DNA of 63,735 nucleotides. Source: Octopus sinensis. Its lineage: Eukaryota. This document shows, in pieces, positions 3,077 through 62,702 of the stretch. The position numbers and the translations under genes are program-made. The notes under the pieces were generated by a model. It saw only the letters and a list, made by a program, of their open reading frames with translations. It did not search any database and was not told the origin of the DNA. Position 1 is the first letter of the stretch. Each line of letters opens with the position of its first letter. The stretch is from positions 1 to 63,735 of the forward strand of contig NW_021833651.1 in the NCBI RefSeq assembly GCF_006345805.1, read 5' to 3'.

Positions 3077-3444
3077 CAAAAAACACATGATATATAGTTA
3101 CAAACAAACAAAGGAAAGGAAAAGACAGACAACGAAATGTCGTCAAATCCTCGTCACTTATCGTCCGATGGATCGCAGCACTTTCACTTTGTGGTGCTCT
3201 AAGCTAGATGTGTTGGTGTGTGTATGAGTGTGTGTGAGAGAGAGAGAGAGAGAGAAGCTGACGCTTGTGAAGTTCATAAGGCAATCTTTTATTGTGATCA
3301 GCATATTTAAACCTAGTTTAATTTGTATTTTTTTTCTGTTAAAAGTTTGTAAACCAGTGAAGAGGAAGTAAATTTCTAATTTTTATTTATCTATGCATCT
3401 CTTTATCTAACTATATATAGGTATAACGGTAGATACATAGATAT

Positions 3445-4437
3445 GTTTCTTTATTAGCCACACACGGCTGAACACAGAGGGGACAAATTACAAAGTAGAG
3501 CTTTTCTTTTTGGGGAGGAGAAAAAAATAGGGGGTGGGTGGTTTTCGATCAAAACGGATTGTAAAAAGAAATTTTTAATATAAAACAATTTTTAAACGAT
3601 CAATAGGGGTCGTGTATCACAGAAATGTCATGATGTAAAGTGTAAATGGGGAAACGGATAAGGTTTATCCGTGGAAAGAAAAGCCTACAGAAAAGACCAC
3701 GGTAACCTCGGTCAATAATGACACATGTTAACACATTTATTTGCAAGTAAGTAACTCTGTTTCAAATTTTTCTGGGTTCATAGGATTATGCTGAATGTGG
3801 CTTCGTCATTCATACGTGCAATCCTTCTACATTCACCCATCTTTTTTTTAAACATTCGCTTGACAAAACTTGCCTCTCTACTCTCACTTTCCTTTTCAAG
3901 TGATACTTGAAGAAGTTTATGAGAGATTGACCAGAGAGGAAAGTATTTGTCTCTAATCTTTTCAGACACGTCCACCAGATACATTCTTTCGTCATAGCCA
4001 CAAGTATGATGAAAATAGCTCTTCCTTCCTGTTTGAAGGAAGGAGGCGTGACGATATTGACGATAGACTCGGCTGATAAACAGACTCGTCCCACGCATGA
4101 CAGCAGTCGTTCGACATAAGCTCACAGGTCGGAAATGGTTGGACACTGCACGAGTGCGTGCAGAACGGTTTCGTCGCTCTGACCGCATCTCGGGCAGGTC
4201 GGCCCCGTGTTTCTCGAGTCGTGTCTCTAAAGTTTATCCCGAACGGATAGCGCTTATCCCGAACGGGTAGCGTTTCTCGGTAGCACTGCCAGGCCAGGGA
4301 TCTCTGGAAGTTGTCCATAGGTCCCGGCCCGAAAGTCGTCTTGAACAGGCGGGTCAAGTATTCGTCGTTGACGCCCAGGTTCGCCTCGAGATCGTCGTCG
4401 TACCTCCCCTCCACTAATCCCCTATAGAATGCTTTAT
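3445..4437 (-). mobile_element. 5'-truncated Tx1-like LINE (family B), second copy
   Basis: FYRGLVEGRYDDDL...MDNFQRSLAWQCYRETLPVRDK aligns with FYRRMVEAKNDDVL...DNYQKSLTWQCYRNALPVRDK. The 3'UTR is homologous to 1469-1860. Confidence 0.88.
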
Positions 4438-4657
4438 ACACACATACGCACATACATACATACATGCATGCATACATACATACACATACATACATACATA
4501 CATACATACATACATACATACATACATTCAGTGCATTACATTTAGTAACATCAAAGTTTCTACAACAGTGGGTTCCACAAATTTTTTAACAAAGTCACTA
4601 TCAGCGAAATTTCGGAGAACTTTCCTAGTGTGTGCGCTTTTAAACAAATACATCTCA

Positions 4658-11135: not shown

Positions 11136-11920
11136 AGGGAGCATTTCAAAAAGTTTTTTAATTATAGGTATTTATACTCCGGTGAAATTAAGAAATCAAC
11201 TCGCAAGTAAAGGAAACGCTCGAATCCATCACTGTACACACCCACACTCACGCACACACGCGCGCTCACATATACACACACAGAGTCGTATAACTATGTA
11301 TTTATTAATGTATGTTTGAAGATAATCAAACCAAATTCTCATCGTTTCGAGCAATTCACCCAATGAAAATCCGTTCAGCCATTTTCCAGTAATTTTACAA
11401 ACACAGACAGACAAAGACGAGCGGCTACAATACTCTGCTTTCGCTTGCGCGCACTTGAAATTTTGGGGAAGCAGACTAGTCGATTAGACTGACCCAAATA
11501 CATAACTGGTACTTAATTTATTGACCCGAAAGGCAAAGTCGACCTCGGCGGAATTTGAACTCAAATAATGATAATAATTTTTCCAACATAAATATAGTGA
11601 TATTGGACTCTACCACCGAAGACGTCGTATGAGCGTTCAGCTTTTGCCGAACGACCATCACAAATGATTTTGTTTATGGTGATCAAATGCTCGTGCCGCA
11701 CATTAGCGACGTTGTCTGAACAGGCGCACAGGTGTGCACAGGTGTGCCACGCGTCAGGTATCGAAGTGATCATAGAGCAACGTGAGATGAAGTGTTTTGC
11801 TCAAGAACACTTCATCTCACCACTCGGTCAAGGAATTGAAACCACGCTCTCACGATCGTGATTGCAACACCCCAACCGCAAAAGCTATATGCCCTCACAA
11901 TAATCATAAGAAACGTAACA

Positions 11921-12531
11921 ACCCTTTCTACTATAGACACAAGGCCTGACATTTTGTGGGGAGGAGGATAGTTGATTACATCGACCCCTGTGTTTCAGTG
12001 GTACTTATTTTATCAACCCCGAAAGGATAAAAGGCGAAGTCGACCCTCGGCGGAATTTGAACTCAGAACGTAAGGATGAATGAAATGCCGCTAAGCATTT
12101 TTCCCGGCGTGCTAACGATTCTGCCAGCTCACTGACCTCATAATAAAAGTAATAATAATAATCCTTTCTAATATAGACACAAGGCCTGAAATTTTGTGGG
12201 AAGGAGGCTAGTCGATTAGATTGACCCAGTACGCAACTGATACTTAATTTCTTGATCCGAAAGGATGAAAGGCGAAGTCGACCCTCCGCGGAATTTGAAC
12301 TCAGAACGTAAAGACGGATGGAATGCCGCTAAGCATTTTGCGGCGTGCTAACGATTCTGCCAGCTCACCAATAAAAGCAATAATAATAATCCTTTCTAAT
12401 ATAGACACGAGGCCTGAAATTTTGTGGGAGGGTGATAGTCGATTAGATTGACCCCAGTACGCAACTGGTACTTAATTTATTGATCCGAAAGGATGAAAGG
12501 CAAAGTCGACCTCGGCGGAGTTTGAACTCAA
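11921..12531 (-). mobile_element. Head-to-tail array of three tRNA-SINEs (~235-bp period)
   Basis: The unit cctttcta.tatagacac.aggcctgaa...gtcgacctcggcggaatttgaactca...ctgccagctcac repeats at ~11921, 12150 and 12380. The third copy lacks part of the head. Confidence 0.85.
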
Positions 12532-13481
12532 ATAATAATAATTTTCCCAACATAAACAGAAGGCCAGAAATTTGGAGGGAGTTGTCAGTCAAATTTAATC
12601 AACCCCATTATTTAAATGTCAGCTCACCGCCTCACTCTGAATTCAAGCTTCAGTTAGGAAGGAGCTTCTCACACCTATGACAGAATTTCTCCCTGAGCAA
12701 AAAAAAAACACGAAATCTTAAACATAAGTGTGTACAAACTTTAAACAATTTATAACAGGATGAGGAAAAGAAACGATGAGAGCTCGTGATTATAGATTTA
12801 CAGGATTATAATCGGACTGAAAACACCATTGAGTTAGGGGGAAAAAATGGCCGTCAGGAGAACTACGGCGATTATCAGACGATGTATACTTCAGTTCCAC
12901 CTGGCGGTAGAATTTTCTTTATATTGTCTTTCTTCAAATTTTCTATCTTGTCCAATCTGTTCATGTATTGTGTATTTACATTCTCTACCTTCCTCCTTTG
13001 CCCCACCCCTTCTCTCTCCTCTCTCTCTCTCTCTTATATATATATATATATATATATATCTCCTCTCTCTCTTGCTCTGCACATATGTATGGGTGTGAGT
13101 ATATATATATATATATATAATATATTATATATATATATATATATATACACACACAAATACATATATATACATGTATATGCATACATACACACGTACATGT
13201 ATATATCTATATATACACATATATATATTGATGTATATATATATATATATAATATATATTATATATATATATACATCTCATAACATATAATATATATATA
13301 TCTAAGATATATATATATATATGTATATATATGTATATATATGTTATATATATAATATTATATATATATATATAATATACATCAATATATATACACAGAT
13401 ATATACACATATATATATTGATTATATATATATATATATTATATATATATATAGATATATATCTATAATACATATATATAC

Positions 13482-18379: not shown

Positions 18380-18834
18380 ATATAAGATGGGTTTCTACAC
18401 AGTTTTCGTATACTAAATTCTCTCACAAAGGTTTAGTCGCTCAGGTGCCCAAGGTTCAAGGCACCGCATAGCTCTTAAACACACATGGTGTTAGCCATGA
18501 CTACACCTGAGTGGTACATAACCTGTAATATAAATACCAGTTATGTACTGGGATCAATTCAATCATCTCCAAACCGTTTCTCATACAACTCATGGTTTTC
18601 GAACATTTTAAGAATATTCAAAAAACAAACATAATAATAATAATGATAATAAACAATCCTTATTCAGGGACATCAGAGTTGTTCGAGGCCACTCGTCGTT
18701 ATAAGGGGACAAAACCTCCCGCTCAATATATTAATCCTTTGAATGCAGAGAGCAAATGAACCCGCTCAAAACGTTGTTACCTATAAGGGCGGAAGGCAGT
18801 TTTACTCCCATGGCTTTGAAGAAAAAACTCTCCT

Positions 18835-19130
18835 TATAGGCGCAGATATGACTATGTGGTGAGAAGCTCGCTTCTCCAACCACTATACCCTCGGGCCAAC
18901 CAAAGCCTTGTAGGTGAATTTGGGAGACGGAAACTGAAAGAAGCCCATGTACATGTGTTTGTATGTGTGTATCTATGAGTGTGTCTATCGTTGTGTTGCT
19001 TCCCCACCCCCACTGCTCAACAAGCGACGTCGGTTTGTGTACGTCCCCGTAACTTAGAAGTTCGGCGAAAGAAGATCGACGGGATAGATACCAGGCTTTT
19101 AAAAAATAAATACAGCGATATATTTAAAGT
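18835..19130 (+). mobile_element. tRNA-derived SINE
   Basis: ggcgcagatatgactatgtggtgagaag head and family body. Confidence 0.7.
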
Positions 19131-27069: not shown

Positions 27070-27497
27070 ATATATATATTATATATATAATAGAAATATT
27101 AAAATTACTAAGTCTCTCTATAGTAGATTACAGCAGCGTTACTGGATATTAGTATGGCGATAATTATTATAATATATTATATTATATTATATATATATAT
27201 ATATATACTATAATATATATATATATACATACAGTGTATAATAAATCACAAAGAAACAGGAAACTATGCTTATGGCTGTTTCTGCTTCTAGATATAGTGC
27301 AGTGAGTTCTGTGTGCTTGTGCACACTTAATGGCTTCTTCGGAGCTTCAAAATTCTATAACCCATAGGATGATGCACAAGCATACAGTTCTGGGTGCACT
27401 GCATTTAAACGGAAACAGCTGTAGGGTAATGATGTTCACTGCATAATCTCCTGTTCCTTTGTCATTTAATTATATGCACACACATACATACATATAT

Positions 27498-41329: not shown

Positions 41330-41448
41330 GAATGTATATATATATATATATGTATATATTACACCAAGTATTAGGGGCTGTGGATCACCAACTAAATTGT
41401 TTTTCTATGTTCATATTTGTATTATATGTATATATATATATATGTATA

Positions 41449-41494
<46 letters not shown>

Positions 41495-41704
41495 ATATTG
41501 TATGTATATATATGTGTGTGTGTGTATATATGTATTTATATGTATATATATATATATATGTGTGTGTGTGTATATATATCTATTTATATGTATATATATA
41601 TATGTGCGTATGTATATATATGCATGCATTTATATGTGTATATATATATGTATATATGTGTGTGTATGTATATGTATGTATTTACATATATGTATATATA
41701 TATA

Positions 41705-43115
41705 TGTTTGAAAGAGTGTTAAGATCAAGGATAGCTGACTTCCTGGAGACCCACAAACTCCTAAATGCAAATCAGCATGGCTTTCGCTGTGGCAGGGCCT
41801 GTCTAACACAGCTCTTACACCACATTGAAGATGTACTCAAAGCCTTGGGAACAGGTTCGAACTCTGACGTCATATATCTTGACTTCAGTAAAGCGTTCGA
41901 CAGGGTAGACCATAATATCCTACTCTCAAAATTGGCAAATGTTGGAATCTGTGGAAAAGTTCTACACTGGATTAAGTATTTCCTGGCGAATAGAACACAT
42001 GTTGTAGTTGATGGAGTCCACTCAAGCCCAGCAAAAGTCACCAGCGGTGTTCCCCAGGGGACTGTCTTGGGTCCGCTACTCTTCATAATTTACATAAACG
42101 ACCTTTCCAGTATCGTACATTACTGCAAAGTGAAAATATTTGCTGATGACACTAAGCTCCAGCAAATCGTCAATGAAGAAGCAGACCGAACTCAACTCCA
42201 GTCTGATCTATATGCTGTGAGTCAATGGGCAGACAGAAACAAAATGCAACTGAATGAGGGAAAATTTGGGCTGATGCATTTTGGAAGAAATTCCTCACTA
42301 AAACAGCCATACTCTCTTCCTTCAGGGGAACCGCTCACAGTCTCTAACAATATCAGAGACCTGGGTGTAATTGTTGATGACGATCTCAGTTGGAGTGCAC
42401 ACATCAACAAGAAGGTCGATATAACTCGTAGGATGAGTTCCTGGATCTTAAGAACTTTCCGGTCCAGAGAACAAGGTGTCATCATACCACTTTTCTCCTC
42501 CTTTGTACGGCCACACCTCGAATATTGCTGCCCACTGTGGTCTCCCCATACAAGACAAAACATCTCCAGGATTGAGTCACCCCAGAGGGCACTCACTAAA
42601 CGAATTGAAGGCATGGCTGCTCTCGATTATTGGGATCGCCTTAAAGCCTTGAAACTTTACTCTCTCCAGCGTCGCCATGAGCGGTACATCATTTGTACGA
42701 TGTGGAGAATATACCGCCAACTTTGCCCAAACGACCTTAACATTAGCTTCAAGGTTCATCCAAGACTGGGACCACGGGCCATACGTCCCCGGCCCAATTC
42801 AAGATCACAGCATACATGTACACTGCAACATAATTTCTTTTCCTCAACAGGCCCTGCCCTATTTAACATTGTCCCGAGGGAGATCAAAGAGGAAAAGGAT
42901 CCCATCAACTTTAAACAGAGTCTGGATAGATTCCTTCAAAGAATACCAGATAAGCCACCCATAATTGGATACAACTCACCCAACAAGAACTCACTACTTG
43001 AATGGACCATAAACAAAACTTGACTTAAACAGGATTCGAATAATCCTATCAGGTGGTTCTATTAAGTTAGACATGGCCTGGACCAATCTTTGGTCGAAAT
43101 ATATCTAAGTTTTAT
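41705..43115 (+). mobile_element. 5'-truncated CR1/L2-group LINE with uninterrupted RT frame (to 43023)
   Basis: NQHGFRCGR, YLDFSKAFDRVDH, SGVPQGTVLGPLLF, FADD and VRPHLEYC motifs. The 3' tail is atctaagtttt x2. Confidence 0.92.
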
Positions 43116-43252: not shown

Positions 43253-43495
43253 AAACACATTAAAACAGAAACTGACCCTATAGGGTTCAAGAAGTCTTTG
43301 GACAGATTCCTTCAAGAAATCCCGGATAAACCCCCTACACCCGGATATGTCTCTGTAAACAATAACTCTCTACTTGAGTGGGCCATAGTGCCCAAATTCT
43401 GACTTGAAAGACTTCACCAGGTGGTGCTATTAAGTTAGACATGGCCTGGGCCAATAATGGCCGAAACCTATCAAAGTATCAAGTATCAAAGTATA
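43253..43495 (+). mobile_element. 3' terminal fragment of a related CR1/L2-group subfamily
   Basis: IKTETDPIGFKKSLDRFLQEIPDKPPTPGYVSVNNNSLLEW, a homologous 3'UTR and a (tatcaaag)n tail. Confidence 0.85.
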
Positions 43496-47261: not shown

Positions 47262-47670
47262 ATAGGCGCAGGAGTGGCTGTGTGGTAAGTAGCTTGCTAA
47301 CCAACCACATGGTTCCGGGTTCAGTCCCACTGCGTGGCATCTTGGGCAAGTGTCTTCTGTATAGCCCCGGGCCGACCAATGCCTTGTGAGTGGATTTGGT
47401 AGACGGAACTGAAAGAAGCCTGTCGTATATATGTATATATATAGGGTGTGTGTGTGTATATGTTTGTGTGTGTGTGTTTTTGTCCCCCTAACTTGCTTAC
47501 AACCGATGCTGCGGTGTTTACGCCCCCCGTCACTTAGCGGTTAGGCAAAAGAGGCCGATAGAATAAGTACTGGGATTACAAAGAATAAGTCCCGGGGTCG
47601 ATTGCTCGACGAAAAAGGCGGTGCTCCCGCATGGCCGCAGTTCAAATGAACTGCAAACAAGTAAAAGAGT
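47262..47670 (+). mobile_element. tRNA-derived SINE, complete
   Basis: ggcgcaggagtggctgtgtggtaag...ggttcagtccc head, body and tail. Confidence 0.9.
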
Positions 47671-47819
47671 ATGTATATATATATATGCATATATATATAT
47701 TTATATATGTATATATATGCATATATATATTTATATATGTATATATATGCATATATATATATTTATATATGTATATATATGCATATATATATATTTATAT
47801 ATGCGTGTATATATATATA

Positions 47820-48539
47820 TAATGGAAATATTAAAATAACTAAGTCTCTCTAAAAGAGAACAGCGGCAGCGTTCCCGGAAAATAATAGTTATCGCCATAC
47901 TAATATGGCATTCTTTATAAAGAAAAAAGCTGTCCACTTATTAGCTCCATGAGGCCATCGCCTTAAGTTAGCTATTTGATACACAAACTGTATCCATATA
48001 ACCTCGGACAAGGGAGGTCAGTCGCTCCACACGCTACTTGACCGGCAGCTACAGACGACGTTTCGGGGTATTGCCCCTTTTCAATGCAGCGTAGCCAGCC
48101 AGTAGGTTCGCTTCCGACAATCTTGTTCGATGGTTTTATTTACCTAGTTTCGGTGGAATACATCCACTTGTTTTCAATAATAGAAATATTAAAATAACTA
48201 AGTCTCTCTAAAAGAGAACAGCGGCAGCGTTCCGGAAAATAATAGTTATCGCCATACTAATATGGCCTTCTTATAAAAATAAGAAACAAGCTGTGTATCA
48301 ATAGCTAACTTAAGGCGATGGCCTCATGGAGCTAATAAGCGGACAGCTTTTTTCTTATTTTTATAAGAATGCCATATTAGTATGGCGATAACTATTATTT
48401 TCCGGGAACGCTGCCGCTGTTCTCTTTTAGAGAGACTTAGTTATTTTAATATTTCTATTATTGAAAACAAGTGGATGTATTCCACCGAAACTAGGTAAAT
48501 AAAACCATCGAACAGAGATTGTCGGAAGCGACACCTACT
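47820..48539. mobile_element. Hammerhead-bearing ~362-bp repeat: ~1.3 inverted monomers (47820-48292), then a direct partial monomer (48293-48539)
   Basis: Matches 53907-54284. Begins in (TA)n. Partial copies at 27077-27150 and 62538-62665. Confidence 0.85.
48048..48090 (-). ncRNA. Type I hammerhead, U3:A8 variant (inverted monomer)
   Basis: Minus strand gctgca-TTGAAAA-gggg-caata-cccc-GAAA-cgtcg-TC|tgtagc. Confidence 0.7.
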
Positions 48540-48756
48540 GATTTTTCCTTGGATTACGTCGGATTATTTTACGCTGTAAGCTGTTATGTTAGTTCGTTCT
48601 GTTCTGGATTTACACGTACAATTTTTGGAGTATTAACTTGTGAAACAAAGTAATTTTCGCCCTTCGGGGTAGAAAATTTCTTTTTATATATGAACTTATA
48701 TTCAGTGTGGATTTGATTTTATCTTGTCTCTTGTGACAAGTCACTTGCATTTTATT

Positions 48757-50247
48757 ATGGATCTTGACTTAACGTCAAATTCTGATTTTCCCGAGATGGG
48801 AGAAGTATATAAAGCAAAAGGATACAAAGGAGAAACAAAGTTTTTCGGAAGCCGTTGGAGGCAATGTTATAGAACTGGAAGTAACAATGGAGGATCTCTT
48901 CAAGTTCAGAAAGTTCATACAAAGGAATGGAGAAGAAACGAGAATAATACCGCCCCCTGACACCTTACAAGCAATCCGTGAGAAGACGGTAATTTATAAG
49001 GTATAAATATTAAGGAAAAAAAGATTGCAGATGTAAGAAATGAATTGGTAGAACGGTGCATGGCACCAATTTGGAACAAGGTTCGCTATGTTGGCCGAGG
49101 AGTGAGAAGCGCTACTATTGAAGCGCATTGAGTCGAGCGCATTTCGAGTCGTAGCATAGCGAAGGAAATTTCAACTCAAACGTTGAAGAGTGCAGACATC
49201 CTGTTGCTGCCCACGTACTTAGGGCGCAGAACAGCTAAGATAACAATAGAGGATATACCAACAGGTTACGATGTAATGTGGGCAGCAACAGCGGTCGTAT
49301 TCGACGTAGAAGAGAATTAAACATTTTAAACATGAGGATGAAAGAGGCAAAATTTTGGAAAGGTCAGCAGCTTGAAATGATCGTTCAAGCTGACAATGCA
49401 ACGCTGGAGAGTTTGCCAGACAGGGTCTTCGTGGGGGATGGACACACTGCGCGGGTATCGGTTGAGGGACGTAGGCCCAGATGTTTCAAATGTGGGCAGA
49501 AGGGTCACGTCCGCTCAGAGTGCAAAAAGAAAAAAACCCGTTAATGCCCCCATTCAAACCGCTGTGGAGAACAAAGCAGACATCACAGCAACAACAAAAG
49601 AGAATACCCGGAAAAAGCAAAATGAAAGTCAAAAGGAGGAAAAGAAAATGAATGGAAAACAAAGCGAAAACGAAAACGAGGTGGAAAATATTTTATCAAA
49701 TGGAAAAGAACTGGAAGTAATGGAATATACGACTGTAACCAACAAAAGGAAGAAATCCAATACCCCGGACTCCCCACCCCAAACAAAAAGAAAAACAAAC
49801 GCAGAAGAACAACAAAAAAATTATCCAATCCCACCCCGCTGGCACTACTTTTGTAGGCCAGCATTTCATTAAACCCCAGCCCCCAACTTTAAAAGGATTC
49901 AAAAAAACCGATAGGTGCATTGCTTATAACACAAAAAACGAGAGAGTAGTTTGGTACATAAAGGCGAAACCAAACATAAAATGTTTCAATCATCGGAAAA
50001 AAACCCGGATTGGAGGTATGCGAAGGTTGGAGAGGAGGAATGGAAGGAGAGACTCTTCCAACTACACGTGAGGGACAACCTGATTAAAGATGTCACACAA
50101 GAGGTGATAGCTGGAAAATTGAATATTAGCCCGGCAGCCACTCCATCCCAGAGCCCGGTGGCAACGCCGGTTAAATGCCCAGCAACAACGGAGAGTGTGG
50201 GGGAAGCAGGCAGACAAAAGCTGCCATGCTCCCTCTCACAACCGTAA
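48757..50247 (+). CDS. Tx1 ORF1 (gag-like, RRM-like region plus CCHC knuckle), ~500 aa, frameshifted as assembled
   Basis: PTYLGRRTAKITIEDIP and RCFKCGQKGHVRSEC. Confidence 0.8.
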
Positions 50248-50271
50248 GTAACAAACTTTCTTCATTCATCG

Positions 50272-53200
50272 ATGATTAAGTTGGGCTGTATAAATGTGCG
50301 TGGAATGGGGTCGAAATGGAAACAGGCTTGCTTGCTGGACGACCTCAGGACACACAGAATAGATGTAGCCATTGTCACCGAGGTCCAAGATGAGAGGAAC
50401 CCAAGCGTTCTCGCATCTTCTCAATGGTTACGAGAAATTTATTTCTCCTAGCCGAGGAGGAAGTGCAGGCGTGGCAGTCCTTATCAGGAAGAACTTGGAC
50501 TTACAGGTAAGTACTGTCTTTATGGACCCAGAAGGTAGGCTGGTTGTCCTCGATGTAACTCACGTAAGTAAGCAGTCCTTCAGGTTGGTAGCTGTTTATG
50601 CTCCTAATGAGGGTAGGCAGACTGGTTTTTATCGGAACTTGGAGCACTTTCTAGTGACGTCTAAAACGGTAGTATTGGTAGGGGATTTCAACACACTATC
50701 GATGCGCGGATAGATAGTGTGGGCTCGTCTGATAGAAGGGGGAATCCTTGCCTTAAGGGTCTACTGACGAGCTTTAATCTAGTAGATCGGTTTCGAATGG
50801 ATGAGCCGAGCATTCCACAGTGGACGTGGAGTAACAATGACGGCTCACGCAGATCGTATATAGATAGGGTATTTGTTAAAGAACGAGATAGGAATAGCAT
50901 TAGCTGTCCACAATTTTGTATTGTGCCTTACACGGATCACAAATTAGTGACGTGTGAGGTACATGTAGATAAATGCCATAGACAGGGACCCGGATACTGG
51001 AAAATGAACAAGTCTATTTTGGCTTGTGAAGCTTTCCGTAACCGGATTATGGAATTAGTCCAGAGGGCATTATGTGGAACCATCATTAATAATAGATGGT
51101 GGATCGCCCTCAAAAGAGCCATCCGTTTGGAGTCCATTAGATTTAGCAACCAGCTAAGTTTAGATAGGACTAGAATAGAGGGCGATTTAGTTAAGAACTT
51201 AGACGAGGCAATGGGATCTGGCTGTGCATCTAGAGTGTTAGCAGAGAGAACGATCTTGTACCGTCACCTCAATGCCAAGCATGAAGGATGTAGAGTCAGA
51301 GCTAAGCTACGTGCAGTGAAACGAGAAGGTATTAATGTTGCCGGATGGGCACGTCGTGTGGAGAGTCAGAAGGGCAAAAAGTCCTCTATTAAGTCTTTAA
51401 CTGACGAACAGGGACGCAAAATCTATGGACAGGAGGAGATACAGAAGGTCTTTCAAAAGCATTTCGCTCGGTTTTGTTGGGGAGGGCGATCCACTCGAGC
51501 GAGGGGAGGACTTACAGAACTTCCTAGCTGGTGGGCCTCGGCTCTCGCCAAGCAGAGCGGAACGCTGTGAAGGACCGATTACTCCCGCGGAGGTAAGAGG
51601 GGTTTTGGCTGAATGCGCCCGGGAAAAGTCGCCGGGACTGGATGGTCTGCCCTATGAGTTTTATTGTTGTATGCCGGACTTGTTCGGGGACATACTGGCA
51701 AGCGTCTACGCAAACTGGCAACAGAATGGGAGGATTCCCAGTTCTGTGAGCCGGGGAGTTGTGACGCTGATCCAGAAAGACCCGAGCAAGGGGGATAATT
51801 TAGTAATTATAGGCCCATAACTCTACTTAATGTAGAGTTAAAGATTTTGGCCAAGGTGTTAGCAGAAAGGTTGAAGGTCGTCATGGAAAAACTTGTCGGA
51901 AAGGCACAGACATGTGCAATCCCAGGCAGGTCGATCGAAGATAATCTTCACCTTCTACGCTACACTATAGACAGGGTTGGGCAATTAGCCGGCAAAGGAG
52001 GGGCATTGGTCCATTTAGACCAAAGTAAAGCATTTGATAGGGTAGATCATCAGTACCTGGCGACGGTTCTCGAAGCGGCTGGGCTAGGTCCTGACTTTCG
52101 CGGGGGTGGATATCAGCTATGTACAGCGGTATCAAGTCCACAGTCCAGATAAACGGTTACTTAACGGAACCGTTTTCGATTAAGCGTTCAGTTCGTCAAG
52201 GATGTCCCTTGTCCCCCTCCTGTACGTTTTGGCTCTTGAGCCATTGCTGCGGAAGTTGGAGACGGTGAGATGCAATCCTAATGAAATCGGATGCGGTAAG
52301 TCTGTTTCTCTGCGTATGCGGATGACGTCACCTTCATCGTGTCCAACGAAGCACAACTAACTCGTGTAGAAGGTGCTCTCCGAAGATACGAAGCGGTGGC
52401 TGGGGCAAAAGTTAACAAGGACAAGTCCACTGGTTGCGCGCCTCGGCACCTGGAGGAACAAGCCGATATCGTCCAGTGTTGTTGGACACTGGACAGATGG
52501 TCCTGTTAAATTGCTTGGAGTTTGGTTTGGTTCAGACTCCCAGACGGAGAAAAATGGAGCGAGGTAGTGACCAAGGTAGAAGCCATAGTTCGGGAGTGGT
52601 CCGGAAGGCATCTTTCCTTGAAAGGGAGGGCGGAGGTGGTACAGGTGTTTATAGCATCTGTAATCACCTATCGCCTGACTGTCGTGCCTTGCCCCGATTT
52701 GTGGCTAAGCAAGTTGGATCGACTCCTTTTCCGCTTTTTGTGGAAGGGAGGAAAGCCACTTGTAAGCGCTCCGTGTGTTGCCAGGAACCACTAAAGGGTG
52801 GGCTGGGGATGCCTTGGTTAATGATGCGCAGGCATGCGCTGAGACTGAGACATCTCTGGTTTCACCTGGAAGGTGATAAGGTGTGGAGTCCGCTGGCAGA
52901 TTTCTTTCTTCCCGCAACCGGACTCTATGGAGAGATTTAAACCCGGTTTCATTAAAAGACGGAACCTGACTTATGGCAGAAAGAGTGCCGACAGGCACTC
53001 TGGCTGATCCACAAGATAGGCAAAGCCGGCTGCGGGAATACCACCTCGACATTTTATAGAAGGATGGTAGAGGCAAAAAATGACGACGTCCTAAGAGGGG
53101 CTCTGGGGTTCGATGAGGATCAACTACTATCCGACCTTTTAAGAAGACTTTCAAGCCGGGGTATTGGACAATTACAAAAATCCCTGACTTGGCAGTGCTA

Positions 53201-53672
53201 TAGGAATGCTCTACCTGTTCGCGATAAGTTATATAGGCATGGAATGTCAGTGCCACCGACATGTCCAAGATGTGGGTTGGACGATGAAACCGTCCAGCAC
53301 GCTTTTGTACATTGTCAGGAGCTGTCAGGCTTAATAAGTTACGTAGAACACGTGTTGTCGCATCTGGGACGAGTACAGCTATCGGCTGGTTCTATAATAA
53401 AGATGATACCGCCAGCTGGACTCTCAAAGGAAGGTGAGGCTTGTTTTCACTGTACGGTGGCAGTACTGAAAGAGTGTGTGTGGAGAACTAGATTGGAAGG
53501 TTTGGTGTCAGGAACCTTTGTCTCTGGATATGGTATGTTAAAATACTTCAGATACCATCTAAAGAGCAAGATGGATTTAGAGAAGAGGAACCTGACACAG
53601 AAAAAGTATGTGAATCGATGGAAGGATGTGATAAAAAAGGTGGGTGTGAGTAACCCTGCTTGGTCATCATGA
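50272..53672 (+). CDS. Tx1 ORF2 (APE endonuclease, RT, C-terminal zinc finger), ~1130 aa, frameshifted as assembled
   Basis: INVRG, VYAPN, VGDFN, YIDR, TDH; KSPGLDGLPYEFY, LDQSKAFDRVDH, VRQGCPLSP, AYADD; CPRC...HAFVHC. Confidence 0.9.
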
Positions 53673-53906
53673 AGGGAGAAAATAGTCTCTGGGCTCTTAG
53701 GCTGTCGGGTAAGAATCCTGACTGTGATATACCTAGCTGGCCAAAATCATTTTTAATTTAAAAAAAAAGGAGAAAAGTAAAGTCTAGTATCATAATCAAT
53801 AATCACATATGTAAATATCAAACGAACAACGTAAACTTTTTGTAATTATGTTTTGTATTGTAATGTACTATCTCTGTAAGATTTTTATAATCATAATAAA
53901 GATTTA

Positions 53907-54284
53907 GGAAGCGACACCTACTGGCTGGCTACGCTGCATTGAAAAGGGGCAATACCCCGAAACGCGTCTGTAGCTGCCGGTCAAGTAGTGTGGAGCGACT
54001 GACCTCCCTTGTTCGAAGGTTTATATGATACAGTTTGTGTATCAAATAGCTAACTTAAGGCGATGGCCTCATGGAGCTAATAAGCGGACAGCTTTTTTCT
54101 TATTTTTATAAGAATGCCATATTAGTATGGCGATAACTATTATTTTCCGGGAACGCTGCCGCTGTTCTCTTTTAGAGAGACTTAGTTATTTTAATATTTT
54201 CTTATATGAAAACAAGTGGATGTATTCCACCGAAACTAGGTAAATAAAACCATCGAACAGAGATTGTCGGAAGCGACACCTACT
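53907..54284 (+). mobile_element. Complete 362-bp hammerhead repeat monomer between the two Tx1 copies
   Basis: Runs from the target 16-mer (53907) to the next target 16-mer (54269), a period of 362. Confidence 0.88.
53933..53974 (+). ncRNA. Type I hammerhead, U3:A8 variant; predicted cleavage after 53968
   Basis: gctgca-TTGAAAA-gggg-caata-cccc-GAAA-cgcg-TC|tgtagc. Stem I is 6 bp, stem III acgcgt is palindromic. Confidence 0.75.
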
Positions 54285-54502
54285 GATTTTTCCTTGGATT
54301 ACGTCGGATTATTTTACGCTGTAAGCTGTTATGTTAGTTCGTTCTGTTCTGGATTTACACGTACAATTTTTGGAGTATTAACTTGTGAAACAAAGTAATT
54401 TTCGCCCTTCGGGGTAGAAAATTTCTTTTTATATATGAACTTTAATTCAGTGTGGATTTAATTTTTATCTTGTCTCTTGTGACAAGTCACTTGCATTTTA
54501 TT

Positions 54503-55983
54503 ATGGATCTTGACTTAACGTCAAATTCTGATTTTCCCGAGATGGGAGAAGTTATAAAGCAAAAGGATACAAAGGAGAAACAAAGTTTTTCGGAAGCCGT
54601 TGGAGGCAATGTTATAGAACTGGAAGTAACAATGGAGGATCTCTTCAAGTTCAGAAAGTTCATACAAAGGAATGGAGAAGAAACGAGAATAATACCGCCC
54701 CCTGACACCTTACAAGCAATCCGTGAGAAGACGGTAATTTATAAGGTATATAATATATTAAGGAAAAAAAGATTGCAGATGTAAGAAATGAATTGGTAGA
54801 ACGGTGCATGGCACCAATTTGGAACAAGGTTCGCTATGTTGGCCGAGGAGTGAGAAGCGCTACTATTGAAGCGCATTTCGAGTCGGCTAGCATAGCGAAG
54901 GAAATTTCAACTCAAACGTTGAAGAGTGCAGACATCCTGTTGCTGCCCACGTACTTAGGGCGCAGAACAGCTAAGATAACAATAGAGGATATACCAACAG
55001 GTTACGATGTAATGTGGGCAGCAACAGCGGTCGTATTCGACGTAGAAGAGAAATTAAACATTTTAAACATGAGGATGAAAGAGGCAAAATTTTGGAAAGG
55101 TCAGCAGCTTGAAATGATCGTTCAAGCTGACAATGCAACGCTGGAGAGTTTGCCAGACAGGGTCTTCGTGGGGGATGGACACACTGCGCGGGTATCGGTG
55201 GAGGGACGTAGGCCCAGATGTTTCAAATGTGGGCAGAAGGGTCACGTCCGCTCAGAGTGCAAAAAGAAAAAAACCCGTTAATGCCCCCATTCAAACCGCT
55301 GTGGAGAACAAAGCAGACATCACAGCAACAACAAAAGAGAATACCCGGAAAAAGCAAAATGAAAGTCAAAAGGAGGAAAAGAAAATGAATGGAAAACAAA
55401 GCGAAAACGAAAACGAGGTGGAAAAAATATTTTATCAAATGGAAAAGAACTGGAAGTAATGGAATATACGACTGTAACCAACAAAAGGAAGAAATCCAAT
55501 ACCCCGGACTCCCCACCCCAAACAAAGAAAAACAAACGCAGAAGAACAAACAAAAAATTATCCAATCCACCCCCGCTGGCACTACTTTTGTAGGCCAGCA
55601 TTTCATTAAACCCCAGCCCCCCACTTAAAAGGATTCAAAAAAACCGATAGGTGCATTGCTTATAACACAAAAAACGAGAGAGTAGTTTGGTACATAAAGG
55701 CGAAACCAAACATAAAATGTTTCAAATCATCGGAAAAAAACCCGGATTGGAGGTATGCGAAGGTTGGAGAGGAGGAATGGAAGGAGAGACTCTTCCAACT
55801 ACACGTGAGGGACAACCTGATTAAAGATGTCACACAAGAGGTGATAGCTGGAAAATTGAATATTAGCCCGGCAGCCACTCCATCCCAGAGCCGGTGGCAA
55901 CGCCGGTTAAATGCCCAGCAACAACGGAGAGTGTGGGGGAGGCAGGCAGACAAAAGCTGCCATGCTCCCTCTCACAACCGTAA
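54503..55983 (+). CDS. Tx1 ORF1, copy 2 (frameshifted as assembled)
   Basis: Same motifs as copy 1. Confidence 0.8.
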
Positions 55984-56007
55984 GTAACAAACTTTCTTCA
56001 TTCATCG

Positions 56008-59000
56008 ATGATTAAGTTGGGCTGTATAAATGTGCGTGGAATGGGGTCGAAATGGAAACAGGCTTGCTTGCTGGACGACCTCAGGACACACAAATAATAA
56101 TGTAGCCATTGTCACCGAGTCCAAGATGAGAGGAACCCAAGCGTTCTCGCATCTTCTCAATGGTTACGAGAAATTTATTTCTCCTAGCCGAGGAGGAAGT
56201 GCAGGCGTGGCAGTCCTTATCAGGAAGAACTTGGACTTACAGGTAAGTACTGTCTTTATGGACCAGAAGGTAGGCTGGTTGTCCTCGATGTAACTCACGT
56301 AAGTAAGCAGTCCTTCAGGTTGGTAGCTGTTTATGCTCCTAATGAGGGTAGGCAGACTGGTTTTTATCGGAACTTGGAGCACTTTCTAGTGACGTCTAAA
56401 ACGGTAGTATTGGTAGGGGATTTCAACACTATCATCGATGCGCGGATAGATAGTGTGGGCTCGTCTGATAGAAGGGGGAATCCTTGCCTTAAGGGTCTAC
56501 TGACGAGCTTTAATCTAGTAGATCGGTTTCGAATGGATGAGCCGAGCATTCCACAGTGGACGTGGAGTAACAATGACGGCTCACGCAGATCGTATATAGA
56601 TAGGGTATTTGTTAAAGAACGAGATAGGAATAGCATTAGCTGTCCACAATTTTGTATTGTGCCTTACACGGATCACAAATTAGTGACGTGTGAGGTACAT
56701 GTAGATAAATGCCATAGACAGGGACCCGGATACTGGAAAATGAACAAGTCTATTTTGGCTTGTGAAGCTTTCCGTAACCGGATTATGGAATTAGTCCAGA
56801 GGGCATTATGTGGAACCATCATTAATAATAGATGGTGGATCGCCCTCAAAAGAGCCATCCGTTTGGAGTCCATTAGATTTAGCAACCAGCTAAGTTTAGA
56901 TAGGACTAGAATAGAGGGCGATTTAGTTAAGAACTTAGACGAGGCAATGGGATCTGGCTGTGCATCTAGAGTGTTAGCAGAGAGAACGATCTTGTACCGT
57001 CACCTCAATGCCAGCATGAAGGATGTAGAGTCAGAGCTAAGCTACGTGCAGTGAAACGAGAAGGTATTAATGTTGCCGGATGGGCACGTCGTGTGGAGAG
57101 TCAGAAGGGCAAAAAGTCCTCTATTAAGTCTTTAACTGACGAACAGGGACGCAAAATCTATGGACAGGAGGAGATACAGAAGGTCTTTCAAAAGCATTTC
57201 GCTCGGTTGTTTGGGGAGGGCGATCCACTCGAGCGAGGGGAGGAACTTACAGAACTTCCTAGCTGGTGGGCCTCGGCTCTCGCCAAGCAGAGCGGAACGC
57301 TGTGAAGGACCGATTACTCCCGCGGAGGTAAGAGGGGTTTTGGCTGAATGCGCCCGGGAAAAGTCGCCGGGACTGGATGGTCTGCCCTATGAGTTTTATT
57401 GTTGTATGCCGGACTTGTTCGGGGACATACTGGCAAGCGTCTACGCAAACTGGCAACAGAATGGGAGGATTCCCAGTTCTGTGAGCCGGGGAGTGTGACG
57501 CTGATCCAGAAAGACCCGAGCAAGGGGGATATATTAGTAATTATAGGCCCATAACTCTACTTAATGTAGAGTTAAAGATTTTGGCCAAGGTGTTAGCAGA
57601 AAGGTTGAAGGTCGTCATGGAAAAACTTGTCGGAAAGGCACGACATGTGCAATCCCAGGCAGGTCGATCGAAGATAATCTTCACCTTCTACGCTACACTA
57701 TAGACAGGGTGGGCAATTAGCCGGCAAAGGAGGGGCATTGGTCCATTTAGACCAAAGTAAAGCATTTGATAGGGTAGATCATCAGTACCTGGCGACGGTT
57801 CTCGAAGCGGCTGGGCTAGGTCCTGACTTTCGCGGGTGGATATCAGCTATGTACAGCGGTATCAAGTCCACAGTCCAGATAAACGGTTACTTAACGGAAC
57901 CGTTTTCGATTAAGCGTTCAGTTCGTCAAGGATGTCCCTTGTCCCCTCTCCTGTACGTTTTGGCTCTTGAGCCATTGCTGCGGAAGTTGGAGACGGTGAG
58001 ATGCAATCCTAATGAAATCGGATGCGGTAAGTCTGTTTCTGTCTGCGTATGCGGATGACGTCACCTTCATCGTGTCCAACGAAGCACAACTAACTCGTGT
58101 AGAAGGTGCTCTCCGAAGATACGAAGCGGTGGCTGGGGCAAAAGTTAACAAGGACAAGTCCACTGGTTTGCGCCTCGGCACCTGGAGGAACAAGCCGATA
58201 TCGTCCAGTGTTGTTGGACACTGGACAGATGGTCCTGTTAAATTGCTTGGAGTTTGGTTTGGTTCAGACTCCCAGACGGAGAAAAATTGGAGCGAGGTAG
58301 TGACCAAGGTAGAAGCCATAGTTTGGGAGTGGTCCGGAAGGCATCTTTCCTTGAAAGGGAGGGCGGAGGTGGTACAGGTGTTTATAGCATCTGTAATCAC
58401 CTATCGCCTGACTGTCGTGCCTTGCCCCGATTTGTGGCTAAGCAAGTTGGATCGACTCCTTTTCCGCTTTTTGTGGAAGGGAGGAAAGCCACTTGTAAGG
58501 CGCTCCGTGTGTTGCCAGGAACCACTAAAGGGTGGGCTGGGGATGCCTTGGTTAATGATGCGCAGGCATGCGCTGAGACTGAGACATCTCTGGTTTCACC
58601 TGGAAGGTGATAAGGTGTGGAGTCCGCTGGCAGATAATTTCTTCCCGCAACCGGACTCTATGGAGAGATTTAAACAGGTTTCATTAAAAGACGGAACCTG
58701 ACTTATGGCAGAAAGAGTGCCGACAGGCACTCTGGCTGATCCACAAGATAGGCAAAGCCGGCTGCGGGAATACCACCCGACATTTTATAGAAGGATGGTA
58801 GAGGCAAAAAATGACGACGTCCTAAGAGGGTCTCTGGGGTTCGATGAGGATCAACTATCCGACCTGTTTAAGAAGACTTTCAAGCGGGGTATTTGGACAA
58901 TTACCAAAAATCCCTGACTTGGCAGTGCTATAGGAATGCTCTACCTGTTCGCGATAAGTTATATAGGCATGGAATGTCAGTGCCACCGACATGTCCAAGA

Positions 59001-59401
59001 TGTGGGTTGGACGATGAAACCGTCCAGCACGCTTTTGTACATTGTCAGGAGCTGTCAGGCTTAATAAGTTACGTAGAACACGTGTTGTCGCATCTGGGAC
59101 GAGTACAGCTATCGGCTGGTTCTATAATAAAGATGATACCGCCAGCTGGACTCTCAAAGGAAGGTGAGGCTTGTTTTCACTGTACGGTGGCAGTACTGAA
59201 AGAGTGTGTGTGGAGAACTAATTGGAAGGTTTGGTGTCAGGATCCTTTGTCTCTGGATATGGTATGTTAAAATACTTCAGATACCATCTAAAGAGCAAGA
59301 TGGATTTAGAGAAGAGGAACCTGACACAGAAAAAGTATGTGAATCGATGGAAGGATGTGATAAAAAAAGTGGGTGTGAGTAACCCTGCTTGGTCATCATG
59401 A
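56008..59401 (+). CDS. Tx1 ORF2, copy 2 (frameshifted as assembled)
   Basis: Same APE, RT and zinc-finger motifs, with indels mostly at different positions from copy 1. Confidence 0.88.
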
Positions 59402-59629
59402 AGGGAAAAAATGTCTCTGGGCTCTTAGGCTGTCGGGTAAGAATCCTGACTGTGATATACCTAGCTGGCCAAAATTTTTAATTTAAAAAAAAGAAAGGGA
59501 AAAGTAAAGTCTAGTATCATAATCAATAATCAACAATAAATATCAAACGAACAACGTAAACTTTTTGTAATTATGTTTTGTATTGTAATGTACTATCTCT
59601 GTAAGATTTTTATAATCATAATAAAGTTT

Positions 59630-62060
59630 CAGTTTCTGTTTTGCGTGTCTGGTGTAATGTTGAAGAGAGGCGGGTCCAATTGAGGTGAATAATGGGTGCC
59701 GTATTGTCGTTATGTGTGCGATTTAATTTTTGTTGTGGATGGATGGCACGTGGTCCAAGTGCCTTGGATTATTTTGAAGGTGTATGCCAAACATCATTCG
59801 GACAGTGCTGATGGAATATTTCCACATCAATACAGATAATGTAGCGTTCACGGCGTCGTTGGAGTGAATACAAGTTCAAACAGCTTCTCTAGTCTACCCC
59901 AGTAGTCACTGTCTGACATGCCATCTATCTTTTTTTCATTGACTTTTGGGGAGCTTCAATTCTCATAATATCTTGTTTTGTGTAGGGAGACCACAGTGGA
60001 CAGCAGTATTCAAGGTGGGGTCGGGCAAAAGTGGAGAAGAGAAGGATAAAGTGTGGGAATCTCTCGACTGGAAGTTCTGAGAATCCAGGAACACATTCTG
60101 TGAGCCATGTCAAATTGCTGCTTATATGTGTAGCCCAGCTTATGTTGTTGTCCACTGTTACTCTCAAGTCTCTGATGTTGTTGGACGCCATGAGAATTTC
60201 CCCAGAAGGAAGGGAGTATGGGAGTTTCAGAGCGTCCTCCCTTCCAAAGTGGATCAGTTCGAATTTTGTCGTTCGTTTAGCAACATGTGGTTCTTTTCCG
60301 CCCATGGACAACAGCCAGTAGGTCTGACTGAAGGCTTATCGGTCATCCACGCCATTGATGACTTCTGGAGCTTGGAATCATCAGCGAAGGTTCTGATGTT
60401 CTGTGTTTGATGGTTGTCAGTAATAATCATTTGTAGATGATGAGAGAGAAGTGGGGCCCAACACAGTGCCTTGTGGGACACCCCACGACGCTGACTTTGG
60501 CTGGGCTGGATTTGACTCCTTCGACTACAACATGTTGAGTTCTGTTAGACAGGAAGCACTTGATCCATTGCAGCAGCTTTCCAGTGACACCAATATTGGA
60601 CAGCTTTCTCAGAAGGATCTTATGATCAACCCGTTCAAAGGCCTTGCTGAAATCAAGGTAGATGACATCAGTGTTGGAACTCTCTCCCAAGGCTCTCAAA
60701 ATGTCATCAAAATGATGCATAGCTGCGTCAGGCAATCTCTTCCATACGGAATCCATGCTGGTTGGAGTTCAGCATATTATGAGTCATACGCGATCACAGC
60801 ACTCTCTCAAATACCTTAATGATATGAGAGGTGAGTGAGATGGACGGTAATTCACGGCAAGCGATTTGTTTCCTTTTTGAAAACTGGGACAACAGACTGG
60901 ATAGAAGGCTTCGGTATATTCCAGCTCTAGTGAGTTCCGCCACAGATTGGCTAGAGGGGGTGCAAGTTGATTTTGACACATCTTCAAGACACAAGCAGGG
61001 AACCTATCGGGACCTACTGCTGAATTATGCTTCATTTCCTTTAAGCGCCAAAGGTTATGTCCGATAAAGTGTATTGGGAGTAACATCACTGATACAGCCC
61101 AGATCAGTCATATCAGGATTGCTGAAAACAGAGCAATATTGTTTCTGCAATATCTCTCCCATGGTTTTGGCATTGTCTTGAAGAGTACCATTTTCATCAA
61201 TCAGAGGGCCAATAGTACAACCAGTGACTCTGTGTTTTTTTGCAAATGAAAAGAACACTTTGGGATTGAGTTTGATCTTTTCAATGGCCCAGGCCTCTTC
61301 AGCTCTTCGCTGACTATTGATGATAGACATCATGTTGTTTGGGAGTTTATGTTTTTTAATCTCTAGCGACGAGATGGCAGTCAGGTTGGTGTGTTGCTGT
61401 TGACAGTATTTCAGCTTGTTGATTTTTTTTGTTAATTCTTTTAATTTTCCTAATGAGATTTTCTATTTCTAGAGATTCGTCACTTAGATTTGTTTGCAGA
61501 TCTTAATGGGGTGTGTTTAGCACATATGTTCGTAATGTGTCTACAAATGACTGCCAGGACTTTTGATGTAGTGGTGTGTATGTGTGCGTGAAGGACCAAT
61601 CGACTTGTGCAAGATCATTATTGATCGCATCCCAGTTTGCATTGTGGAAATCCATAGTGTCAAATGGATGAACAGGAGAGATGACATTTGTTTTGCATTT
61701 TGGCCAGTGAAATCTCAGATCACAGAGAACCATGTCATGATCAGAGAGTAGGTTTTCTCTCCACTGCAATATTGTGGATAGTATCAGTGCGATTGCTGAA
61801 AATTAAGTCTAAGACGTTTTTATGACATCTCGTTGGTTCGAGCACCAGTTGGGACAGGAAGAAATCATCCATGAAGTCAAGAAGCGATTCCACTGCCTCC
61901 CTGTCAGGGGTTGAGAGAGAAGAACCTGGCGGCAGACTGTTTGTAGACCAGTCAACCCCGGGAAGGTTGAAGTCTCCCATCATTAAAATGTTGTCAGGTT
62001 GACACTGCTGAATGAAACACTTTATGTTGTTGAGGCATTCCTTGAAGCAGAGCCCAACTA
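59630..62060 (-). mobile_element. Degraded CR1/L2-group LINE (APE to RT), 3' end missing
   Basis: MGDFNLPGVDW, NVLDLIFSN, SDHDMV, GPDRFP, YLDFSKAFERVDH, FADD and ARPHLEYCCPLWSP. Confidence 0.88.
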
Positions 62061-62202
62061 CTGTTATATATATAAGATTAATCAGCCGAAATTGCGAGGA
62101 TGATCCGGTTCTTGACTAAAGATTGAAGGCTTCGAATGTCCCGTCCGTGTTTTTTGTATCGTCTTCTAAATGTTTTGCGTTCTTGTCCCAGTTTGTATTT
62201 TT

Positions 62203-62492: not shown

Positions 62493-62537
<45 letters not shown>

Positions 62538-62539
<2 letters not shown>

Positions 62540-62658
62540 AGCTCTAAACGGACAGCTTTTTTCTTATTTTTATAAGAATGCCATATTAGTATGGCGATAA
62601 CTATTATTTTCCGGGAACGCTGCCGCTGTTCTCTTTTAGAGAGACTTAGTAATTTTAA

Positions 62659-62665
<7 letters not shown>
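62538..62665 (+). mobile_element. Partial copy of the 362-bp hammerhead repeat in (TA)n
   Basis: ggacagcttttttcttatttttataagaatgcc...gagagacttagt matches 54087-54190. Confidence 0.85.

Positions 62666-62702
<37 letters not shown>

Follow-up and report, generated by a model that had tools for sequence, protein, structure and literature searches.

Two long interspersed nuclear elements at the same position of a hammerhead-motif tandem repeat in Octopus sinensis

Known target-specific LINEs and the Octopus sinensis locus

The documented targets of long interspersed nuclear elements (LINEs) of the Tx1 clade are genes for U2, U5, 5S and tRNA, microsatellites and satellites, and also mobile elements, namely a piggyBac derivative, a Mariner family and long terminal repeat (LTR) retrotransposons (PMC4494074, PMC4640811). 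Target-specific LINEs show the retuning of an endonuclease to a genomic safe harbour, the harbours known being rRNA, snRNA, tRNA and 5S genes, microsatellites, telomeres, satellites and a few transposons. We analysed a stretch of 63,735 nucleotides from Octopus sinensis (contig NW_021833651.1; the window), in which two full-length copies of a LINE with an apurinic/apyrimidinic endonuclease (APE) begin at an identical base in two adjacent units of a tandem repeat, and this repeat carries a type-I hammerhead motif.

Among the transposon-targeting LINEs, Tx1L lies in the piggyBac-type Tx1D of Xenopus and Tx1-Mar in Mariner-N4_AMi of crocodilians, a target shared with SINEU-3, for which a 16-bp duplication has been inferred (PMC4494074). 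The octopus element resembles Tx1L and Tx1-Mar in being an APE-type LINE at a fixed position of another repeat, in its tandem insertions around the target and in lacking poly(A), and its duplication of 16 bp has the length of that at the Mariner-N4_AMi target (PMC4494074). It differs from them in that its target would be a tandem repeat with a ribozyme and not a DNA transposon, and in being represented by one locus rather than by hundreds of copies. A tandem, multicopy target is shared with Keno, Mutsu, Dewa, Kibi and Koshi, which use U2, 5S and tRNA arrays and microsatellites (PMC4494074); the targets of these LINEs, however, are host genes or simple repeats and not a retroelement with a catalytic RNA.

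The array and its insertions comprise the following features (window positions, strand in brackets; ORF, open reading frame; RT, reverse transcriptase).

47817-48115 (minus): repeat unit positions 1-301, inverted, containing the unfilled target site 48101-48115
48101-48294 (minus): unit positions 182-378 (partial), in head-to-tail order with 47817-48115
48279-48539 (plus): partial repeat unit, positions ~117-378, ending in the 16-mer 48524-48539 that is the 5' flank of copy 1
48540-53906 (plus): LINE copy 1, full length, 5367 bp, no poly(A) tail
from 48757 (plus): ORF1 of copy 1, with a CCHC knuckle at 49482
50272 to stop at 53672 (plus): ORF2 of copy 1, with APE, RT (YADD at 52309) and zf-RVT
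53907-53922 (plus): second occurrence of the 16-mer, pairing with 48524-48539 as target-site duplication of copy 1
53907-54284 (plus): one whole repeat unit between the two LINE copies, made up of the 362-bp period and a further 16-mer
54285-59629 (plus): LINE copy 2, full length, 5345 bp, with the 5' junction of copy 1 and its own set of frameshifts
Target context across the insertion point: AGATTGTC, GGAAGCGACACCTACT and GGCTGGC, in that order

The 16-mer GGAAGCGACACCTACT has three exact matches in the window (48524-48539, 53907-53922 and 54269-54284), where 0.01 would be expected by chance, and no further match when up to 2 mismatches are allowed; the spacing from 53907 to 54269 gives a repeat period of 362 bp. 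Both LINE copies begin directly 3' of this 16-mer, and copy 1 is bracketed by it on both sides, which is a perfect 16-bp target-site duplication. The plus strand holds 1.7 units, with the LINE as their sole interruption. On the minus strand (48294-47817), 1.3 units stand head-to-tail with a junction that contains no LINE, and this unfilled site reconstitutes the flanks of the filled ones: minus-strand positions 48115-48085 read TGTCGGAAGCGA-ACCTACT followed directly by GGCTGGCTACGCTGC, the 16-mer being one base short, and the unit junction accordingly reads TGTCGGAAGCGA-ACCTACT followed by GGCTGGCTACGC. The original prediction, made from the sequence, had placed the 16-mer before both copies, a duplicate of it after copy 1 within a 362-bp monomer, a hammerhead beginning 10 nt further on and an empty site on the minus strand; all of its coordinates were confirmed, helix I of the hammerhead (GCTGCA) begins at 53933, and the empty site is the one just described.

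The LINE ends in ...AATAAAGATTTA. Its last bases at 53897-53906 (AAAGATTTA) are similar to the target at 48513-48523, just upstream of the 16-mer (AGAGATTGTC), and therefore the duplication of copy 1 may be longer and imperfect, or the 3' end of the LINE may use microhomology at priming.

The two copies are collinear over their full length (98.2-98.3% identity), and frameshifts split both into short ORFs at different places, the frame of copy 1 being broken by about ten indels. On these ORF pieces, Pfam identified zf-CCHC in ORF1 (at 49482 in copy 1 and 55219 in copy 2) as well as Exo_endo_phos, RVT_1 and zf-RVT, and no match to Transposase_22. By taking the frame-keeping allele at each indel we reconstructed an ORF2 of ~1130 codons, with the APE motifs GDFN, IDRV and TDH and the RT motif YADD. 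In a phmmer search against PDB, residues 6-864 of an 875-residue APE+RT query corresponded to residues 12-891 of human L1 ORF2p (E 3.5e-66), while R2 proteins matched the RT core only (E ~1e-24). Because the alignment of its ORF2 with human L1 ORF2p spans the protein from end to end, the inserted element is, as judged from these alignments, an APE-type LINE of the L1/Tx1 group, and it has the APE, RT and C-terminal Cys-rich domain of that group. In the Tx1 clade, the Transposase_22 domain of L1-type ORF1 is replaced by a CCHC zinc knuckle, and the octopus LINE shows the same trait. The best named relatives were a hypothetical protein of Argonauta hians (47%), a 'pol-like' LINE of Ciona (27%) and Zepp of Chlorella (25%); the LINE is about equally distant from the latter two and from human L1, and the protein searches, including one with the Ciona 'pol-like' query, returned no named Tx1 protein. 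Thus, of the Tx1 identity first proposed, the APE-type LINE of the L1/Tx1 group stands, whereas membership of the Tx1 clade itself is not established by similarity.

The 362-bp repeat and its hammerhead motif

Two hammerhead motifs and two dispersed fragments of the repeat unit were located in the window.

53923-53982 (plus): type-I hammerhead motif, predicted cleavage after 53968, starting at the base beside the end of the 16-mer
48040-48100 (minus): hammerhead of the inverted unit, with a 3-nt loop 3 and predicted cleavage after minus-strand base 48054
62536-62671 (plus): isolated unit fragment, positions 165-301, with (AT)n on both sides
27090-27165 (minus): diverged unit fragment, positions ~213-301, ~79% identical, embedded in (TA)n

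The motif at 53923-53982 reads GGCUGGC-UAC-GCUGCA / UUGAAAA / GGGG-CAAUA-CCCC / GAAA / C-GC-G / UC, then, beyond the predicted cleavage site, UGUAGC-U-GCCGGUC, so that cleavage at 53968 would follow GUC. Its core is complete (CUGANGA...GAAA...UH, the G10.1-C11.1 pair and open ends at helix I) except that U3-A8 replaces C3-G8, and its helices comprise 6 bp (helix I), 4 bp (helix II) and 1 bp with a small palindromic loop (helix III). Metazoan type-I hammerheads have been described with 6 bp in helix I, 4 bp in helix II, 1-2 bp in helix III and a palindromic loop of 2-4 nt (Cervera and de la Peña, PMC4209133), and the U3-A8 covariation is known from a Penelope-like element of Cercyon and about 1300 further hits (PMC4209133). 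A descriptor scan that accepted either core pair (U3-A8 or C3-G8) found two sites in the window, both in repeat units, and none in 300 dinucleotide shuffles. RNAfold formed helices I and II in the isolated motif, in the circular 362-nt unit and in the context of read-through from the 3' untranslated region (UTR) of the LINE; the circular unit folds at -122 kcal/mol (z = -7.7 against shuffles). The host repeat thus carries a complete type-I hammerhead motif, for which self-cleavage is predicted. Across the whole window, no Rfam family reached its gathering score and no hammerhead was reported at that score, which is probably explained by the U3-A8 variant and the minimal helix III. The hammerhead originally proposed is therefore upheld by the descriptor scan and the folds, but not recognised by Rfam.

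Animal retrozymes have been described as non-autonomous derivatives of Penelope-like elements (PMC7229834; bioRxiv 10.64898/2026.07.22.740005). With its 362-bp period and one type-I hammerhead per unit, the octopus repeat corresponds to their organisation in tandem repeats of ~170-400 bp, and it shares with metazoan retrozymes and Penelope pseudo-LTRs both a unit of 170-400 nt and a highly structured RNA (PMC7229834, PMC4209133, 10.64898/2026.07.22.740005); with the hammerheads of Penelope-like elements it further shares the type-I topology, the very short palindromic helix III and the U3-A8 core (PMC4209133). It is unlike the known retrozymes in that only ~3 units are seen, and in a motif that the Rfam models do not score. 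The pieces at 27090-27165, 47817 and 62536-62671 all stop near unit position ~301 (...TTTAATATTTCTAT) against (TA)n, the far end of the inverted unit adjoining the (TA)n microsatellite 47670-47821; since three pieces end at the same unit position against (TA)n, the unit apparently homes to such microsatellites, and since dispersed fragments lie in (TA)n away from the LINE, it is mobile in its own right. On these features, we regard the 362-bp unit as a mobile retrozyme-like element related to the hammerhead repeats of Penelope-like elements. A Penelope reverse transcriptase was not found in the window, and an origin of the unit from a tRNA-derived short interspersed nuclear element was discarded after ARAGORN found no tRNA-like part. 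The window as a whole is extraordinarily rich in di-, tri- and tetranucleotide microsatellites, and it contains, at 11916-12530, a 228-bp tandem repeat (2.6 copies, 85% matches).

Target preference and alternative explanations

We modestly favour the reading that the endonuclease of the LINE prefers this sequence and that the two filled units represent two hits of a target-specific family. In support of it, the 5' junctions of two full-length copies are identical, and both copies lie in ribozyme polarity. The LINE stands on the ribozyme strand; on its 3' side comes the 16-mer, which is joined without a gap to the first base of the outer helix of the hammerhead; the hammerhead of the upstream unit lies ~570 nt before the 5' end of the LINE (its cleavage site 316 nt before). 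Because the LINE was inserted one base ahead of this outer helix, the ribozymes on either side, which are on the sense strand of the LINE, have remained intact. The LINE would have entered the repeat by target-primed reverse transcription with a sequence-preferring APE endonuclease whose nicks fall on the bottom strand at the left edge of GGAAGCGACACCTACT and, 16 nt downstream, on the top strand, and such staggered nicks would account for the 16-bp duplication and for the poly(A)-less 3' end. The duplication and the poly(A)-less end are present in copy 1; that they reflect a preference of the endonuclease is what we consider somewhat probable.

A lineage with target-specific members is indicated by a sister LINE family that is 48% identical in the C-terminus of ORF2 and has two copies in the window (3440-4438 and 1470-2051, both minus). 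Both end in ...AATAAAGAAAC directly against an (ATCT)n-type microsatellite, and two copies from Argonauta hians (12480-12800 and 18480-18920 of the locus retrieved from that species) likewise end in (ATCT)n, making four out of four; between the window and A. hians the last ~50 bp are 86-91% identical in DNA. The sister family therefore looks like a Tx1-like, (ATCT)n-specific LINE lineage shared among octopods, ending in its microsatellite as Kibi and Koshi do in (TC)n and (TTC)n (PMC4494074); its presence also points to an octopod cephalopod as the source of the window.

A further relative, 44% identical (ENA metagenome assembly ERZ21867824, contig ctg88761c; ORF1 of 718 and ORF2 of 1155 residues), forms a head-to-tail array of 6821-bp units that are 99.8% identical and have no recognisable spacer; an alignment of its 5' UTR with that of the octopus LINE was uninformative. 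By analogy with this array, the 362-bp unit might be a ribozyme-bearing terminal region of the LINE itself and the locus a head-to-tail array of a 5.73-kb composite, as would be in keeping with other LINEs, e.g. R2, that carry their own 5' ribozyme. We consider this highly improbable, since the unit occurs without the LINE, both as 1.3 tandem units and as (TA)n fragments at 27.1 kb and 62.5 kb, since a 16-bp direct repeat around the coding body has the look of a target-site duplication and no role in a composite, and since no retrieved relative carries a hammerhead. On this view, unit junctions lacking the LINE would have come from deletion between the 16-bp repeats.

Specificity for the hammerhead repeat rests on one locus, and unequal crossing-over yields the same layout. 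A LINE without sequence preference may have landed once by chance in a unit, after which the block of LINE and unit was duplicated and the two junctions became identical by descent; this origin is quite possible, although we do not prefer it. Such a duplication is expected to leave an order of unit, LINE, unit, LINE, in which precisely one unit separates the copies; the copies are 98-99% identical with differences that resemble noise, and a crossover would fit the last ~70 bp of the left and middle units, where the two do not differ. Moreover, mobile elements nested in others are common, and among the 44%-identical relatives, too, tandem arrays occur and flanks are unrelated. A single chance landing is, however, less in keeping with full-length copies that lack poly(A) and show a long, precise duplication, which are traits of target-specific LINEs and unlike those of random L1-like insertions; the sister family in the window is microsatellite-specific, the repeat makes up only ~2% of the window, so that a random hit is unlikely a priori, and the insertion spares both ribozymes to the base.

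Under Kojima's criterion, a LINE is target-specific when one sequence type accounts for >20% of the flanks across many copies; here, flanks matching the repeat unit were found on the 5' side in two of two cases and on the 3' side in one of two, all in one array. The original interpretation is thus supported in part: the same-base insertions and the clean 16-bp duplication are confirmed, but the claim that the family targets the repeat rests on two adjacent copies in one array, and the 3' flank of copy 2 is not the target. Several other results weigh against the explanation that we favour. The 44%-identical family has two truncated copies with unrelated flanks, and the loci of the retrieved relatives (that family and A. 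hians) contain no hammerhead. Within the repeat itself, Rfam at E<=10 on 47800-48560 and 53880-54300 gave no hammerhead, and the two hammerhead copies differ in loop 3 only and so provide no covariation. No further copies of the LINE were found in the metagenome, viral, GTDB or protein collections searched: a protein search with the C-terminal ORF gave three matches of <=53% identity, and the best match of a stitched APE+RT protein query (62%) lay on a 3-kb contig that offers too little flanking sequence. A scan of JGI metagenome contigs and IMG/VR with a ribozyme-core pattern gave chance bacterial and phage matches only; in GTDB genome contigs a 24-mer of the unit had no match, and a protein-guided scan led to one irrelevant bacterial locus.

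The differences between the two copies add a further difficulty for the reading as two independent hits. They comprise 39 mismatches (12 transitions and 27 transversions) and 39 indels, 30 of the latter being of 1-2 nt and 19 of these 30 being changes in homopolymer length, besides a 14-bp tandem duplication and a few 3-nt indels. Most of them look like long-read assembly noise, and the assembly probably consists of lightly polished long-read data; the true sequences of the two copies may be almost the same and unbroken, and frameshifts anywhere in the window are therefore to be distrusted. Because the differences look like noise, they leave the age and independence of the copies unreadable from the sequence, and the attempt to judge independence from them was abandoned, the flanking units being also too short and too similar.

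A point absent from the original prediction concerns the 3' side of copy 2, which lacks both a duplicate of the 16-mer and a repeat unit. The 3' end of copy 2 is complete at 59629, and what follows also speaks against a preferred target.

59630-62100 (minus): unrelated LINE (Exo_endo_phos_2 and RT), 68% identical to a paralogue at 41332-43023

At the junction (59629/59630) this LINE is without its 3' UTR and its last ~45 codons. The junction must therefore have come about by deletion, by recombination with a copy located elsewhere or by misjoining, and not by insertion of the minus-strand LINE. A deletion starting from the nick site of the endonuclease may be one cause; if the junction is a recombination, off-target copies of the LINE exist. 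The paralogue at 41332-43023 (plus; 68% in DNA) belongs to another LINE family and has an apparently intact RT ORF of 563 codons (RVT_1), with a further C-terminal LINE fragment just downstream of it (43253-43387, plus).

Misjoined or collapsed 5.4-kb repeats could also have produced the junction of copy 2 with the foreign LINE, and perhaps the inverted repeat that the units 48101-48294 and 48279-48539 form near 48287. Such an artefact would agree with indels that equal the mismatches in number, with the 19 of 30 small indels in homopolymer length and with transversions in excess of transitions, as well as with a junction that lies exactly at the 3' end of one LINE and yet inside the coding region of another. 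Nevertheless, we judge an artefact to be very unlikely as the source of the arrangement, given that copy 1, its flanks, its duplication and the unfilled site are internally consistent and independent of the suspect junction, and given that inverted partial copies are known in Penelope-type insertions. The inverted repeat (48101-48539, centre ~48287, ~195 bp per arm) is near-perfect and may be an inverted partial copy typical of such insertions, or an artefact. Hairpins reported by Rfam at 48187-48452, among them MIR2630 (86.8 bits against a threshold of 144), were rejected, as they reflect only the inverted arrangement of the units.

The ribozyme as a possible partner of the LINE

The transcripts of the LINE may themselves come under the action of the ribozyme. 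In those that read through, the downstream hammerhead would cut after 53968, and the cut would leave 62 nt of target sequence at the 3' end of the RNA, able to pair with the nicked target; a role of this kind for a read-through tail is the same as that for R1/R2-type elements. A further-reaching idea, which we regard as unlikely, is that the LINE exploits the retrozyme: as it lies exactly between two intact hammerheads of its own strand, the array transcript would cut itself to a unit-length RNA of ~5.73 kb that primes new units. In this RNA, unit positions 63-378 would precede the LINE and unit positions 1-62 would follow it; its target-derived 3' tail of 62 nt would guide priming at a new unit, and it would have the kind of ends on which cellular ligases act when they circularise retrozymes. 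In this case the LINE would borrow the promoter, the ribozyme processing and the homing signal of a Penelope-related parasite, and would mimic the pseudo-LTR-ORF-pseudo-LTR layout of Penelope elements. A comparison is offered by R2 with its HDV-like (hepatitis delta virus-like) 5' ribozyme, a site-specific LINE that likewise lies in a tandem array under transcription, with a self-cleaving RNA able to trim the co-transcript (PMC4494074). R2, however, has its own ribozyme and a restriction-like endonuclease, whereas the ribozyme here is the hammerhead of the target, which the LINE may use.

In the literature, Repbase and Dfam being outside the search, we found no paper that links a Tx1-type LINE to a hammerhead repeat, a retrozyme or a Penelope pseudo-LTR. 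The original description of the repeat as a target class not previously reported is thus fair for ribozyme repeats, but the targeting of transposons and satellites as such is already established (PMC4494074). If confirmed, the locus at most adds a new target class to a known kind of LINE, and the use of the target's ribozyme by the LINE is possibly the only part that goes beyond this. If specificity is not confirmed, the locus would represent an ordinary nested insertion amplified by unequal crossing-over. In either case it provides an example of the U3-A8 hammerhead motif from the cephalopod lineage. Should the preference for the repeat prove true, one retroelement would be living inside another that has a self-cleaving RNA at high expression, and it could be tested naturally at this locus whether the transcript ends of a LINE can be set by a ribozyme foreign to it.

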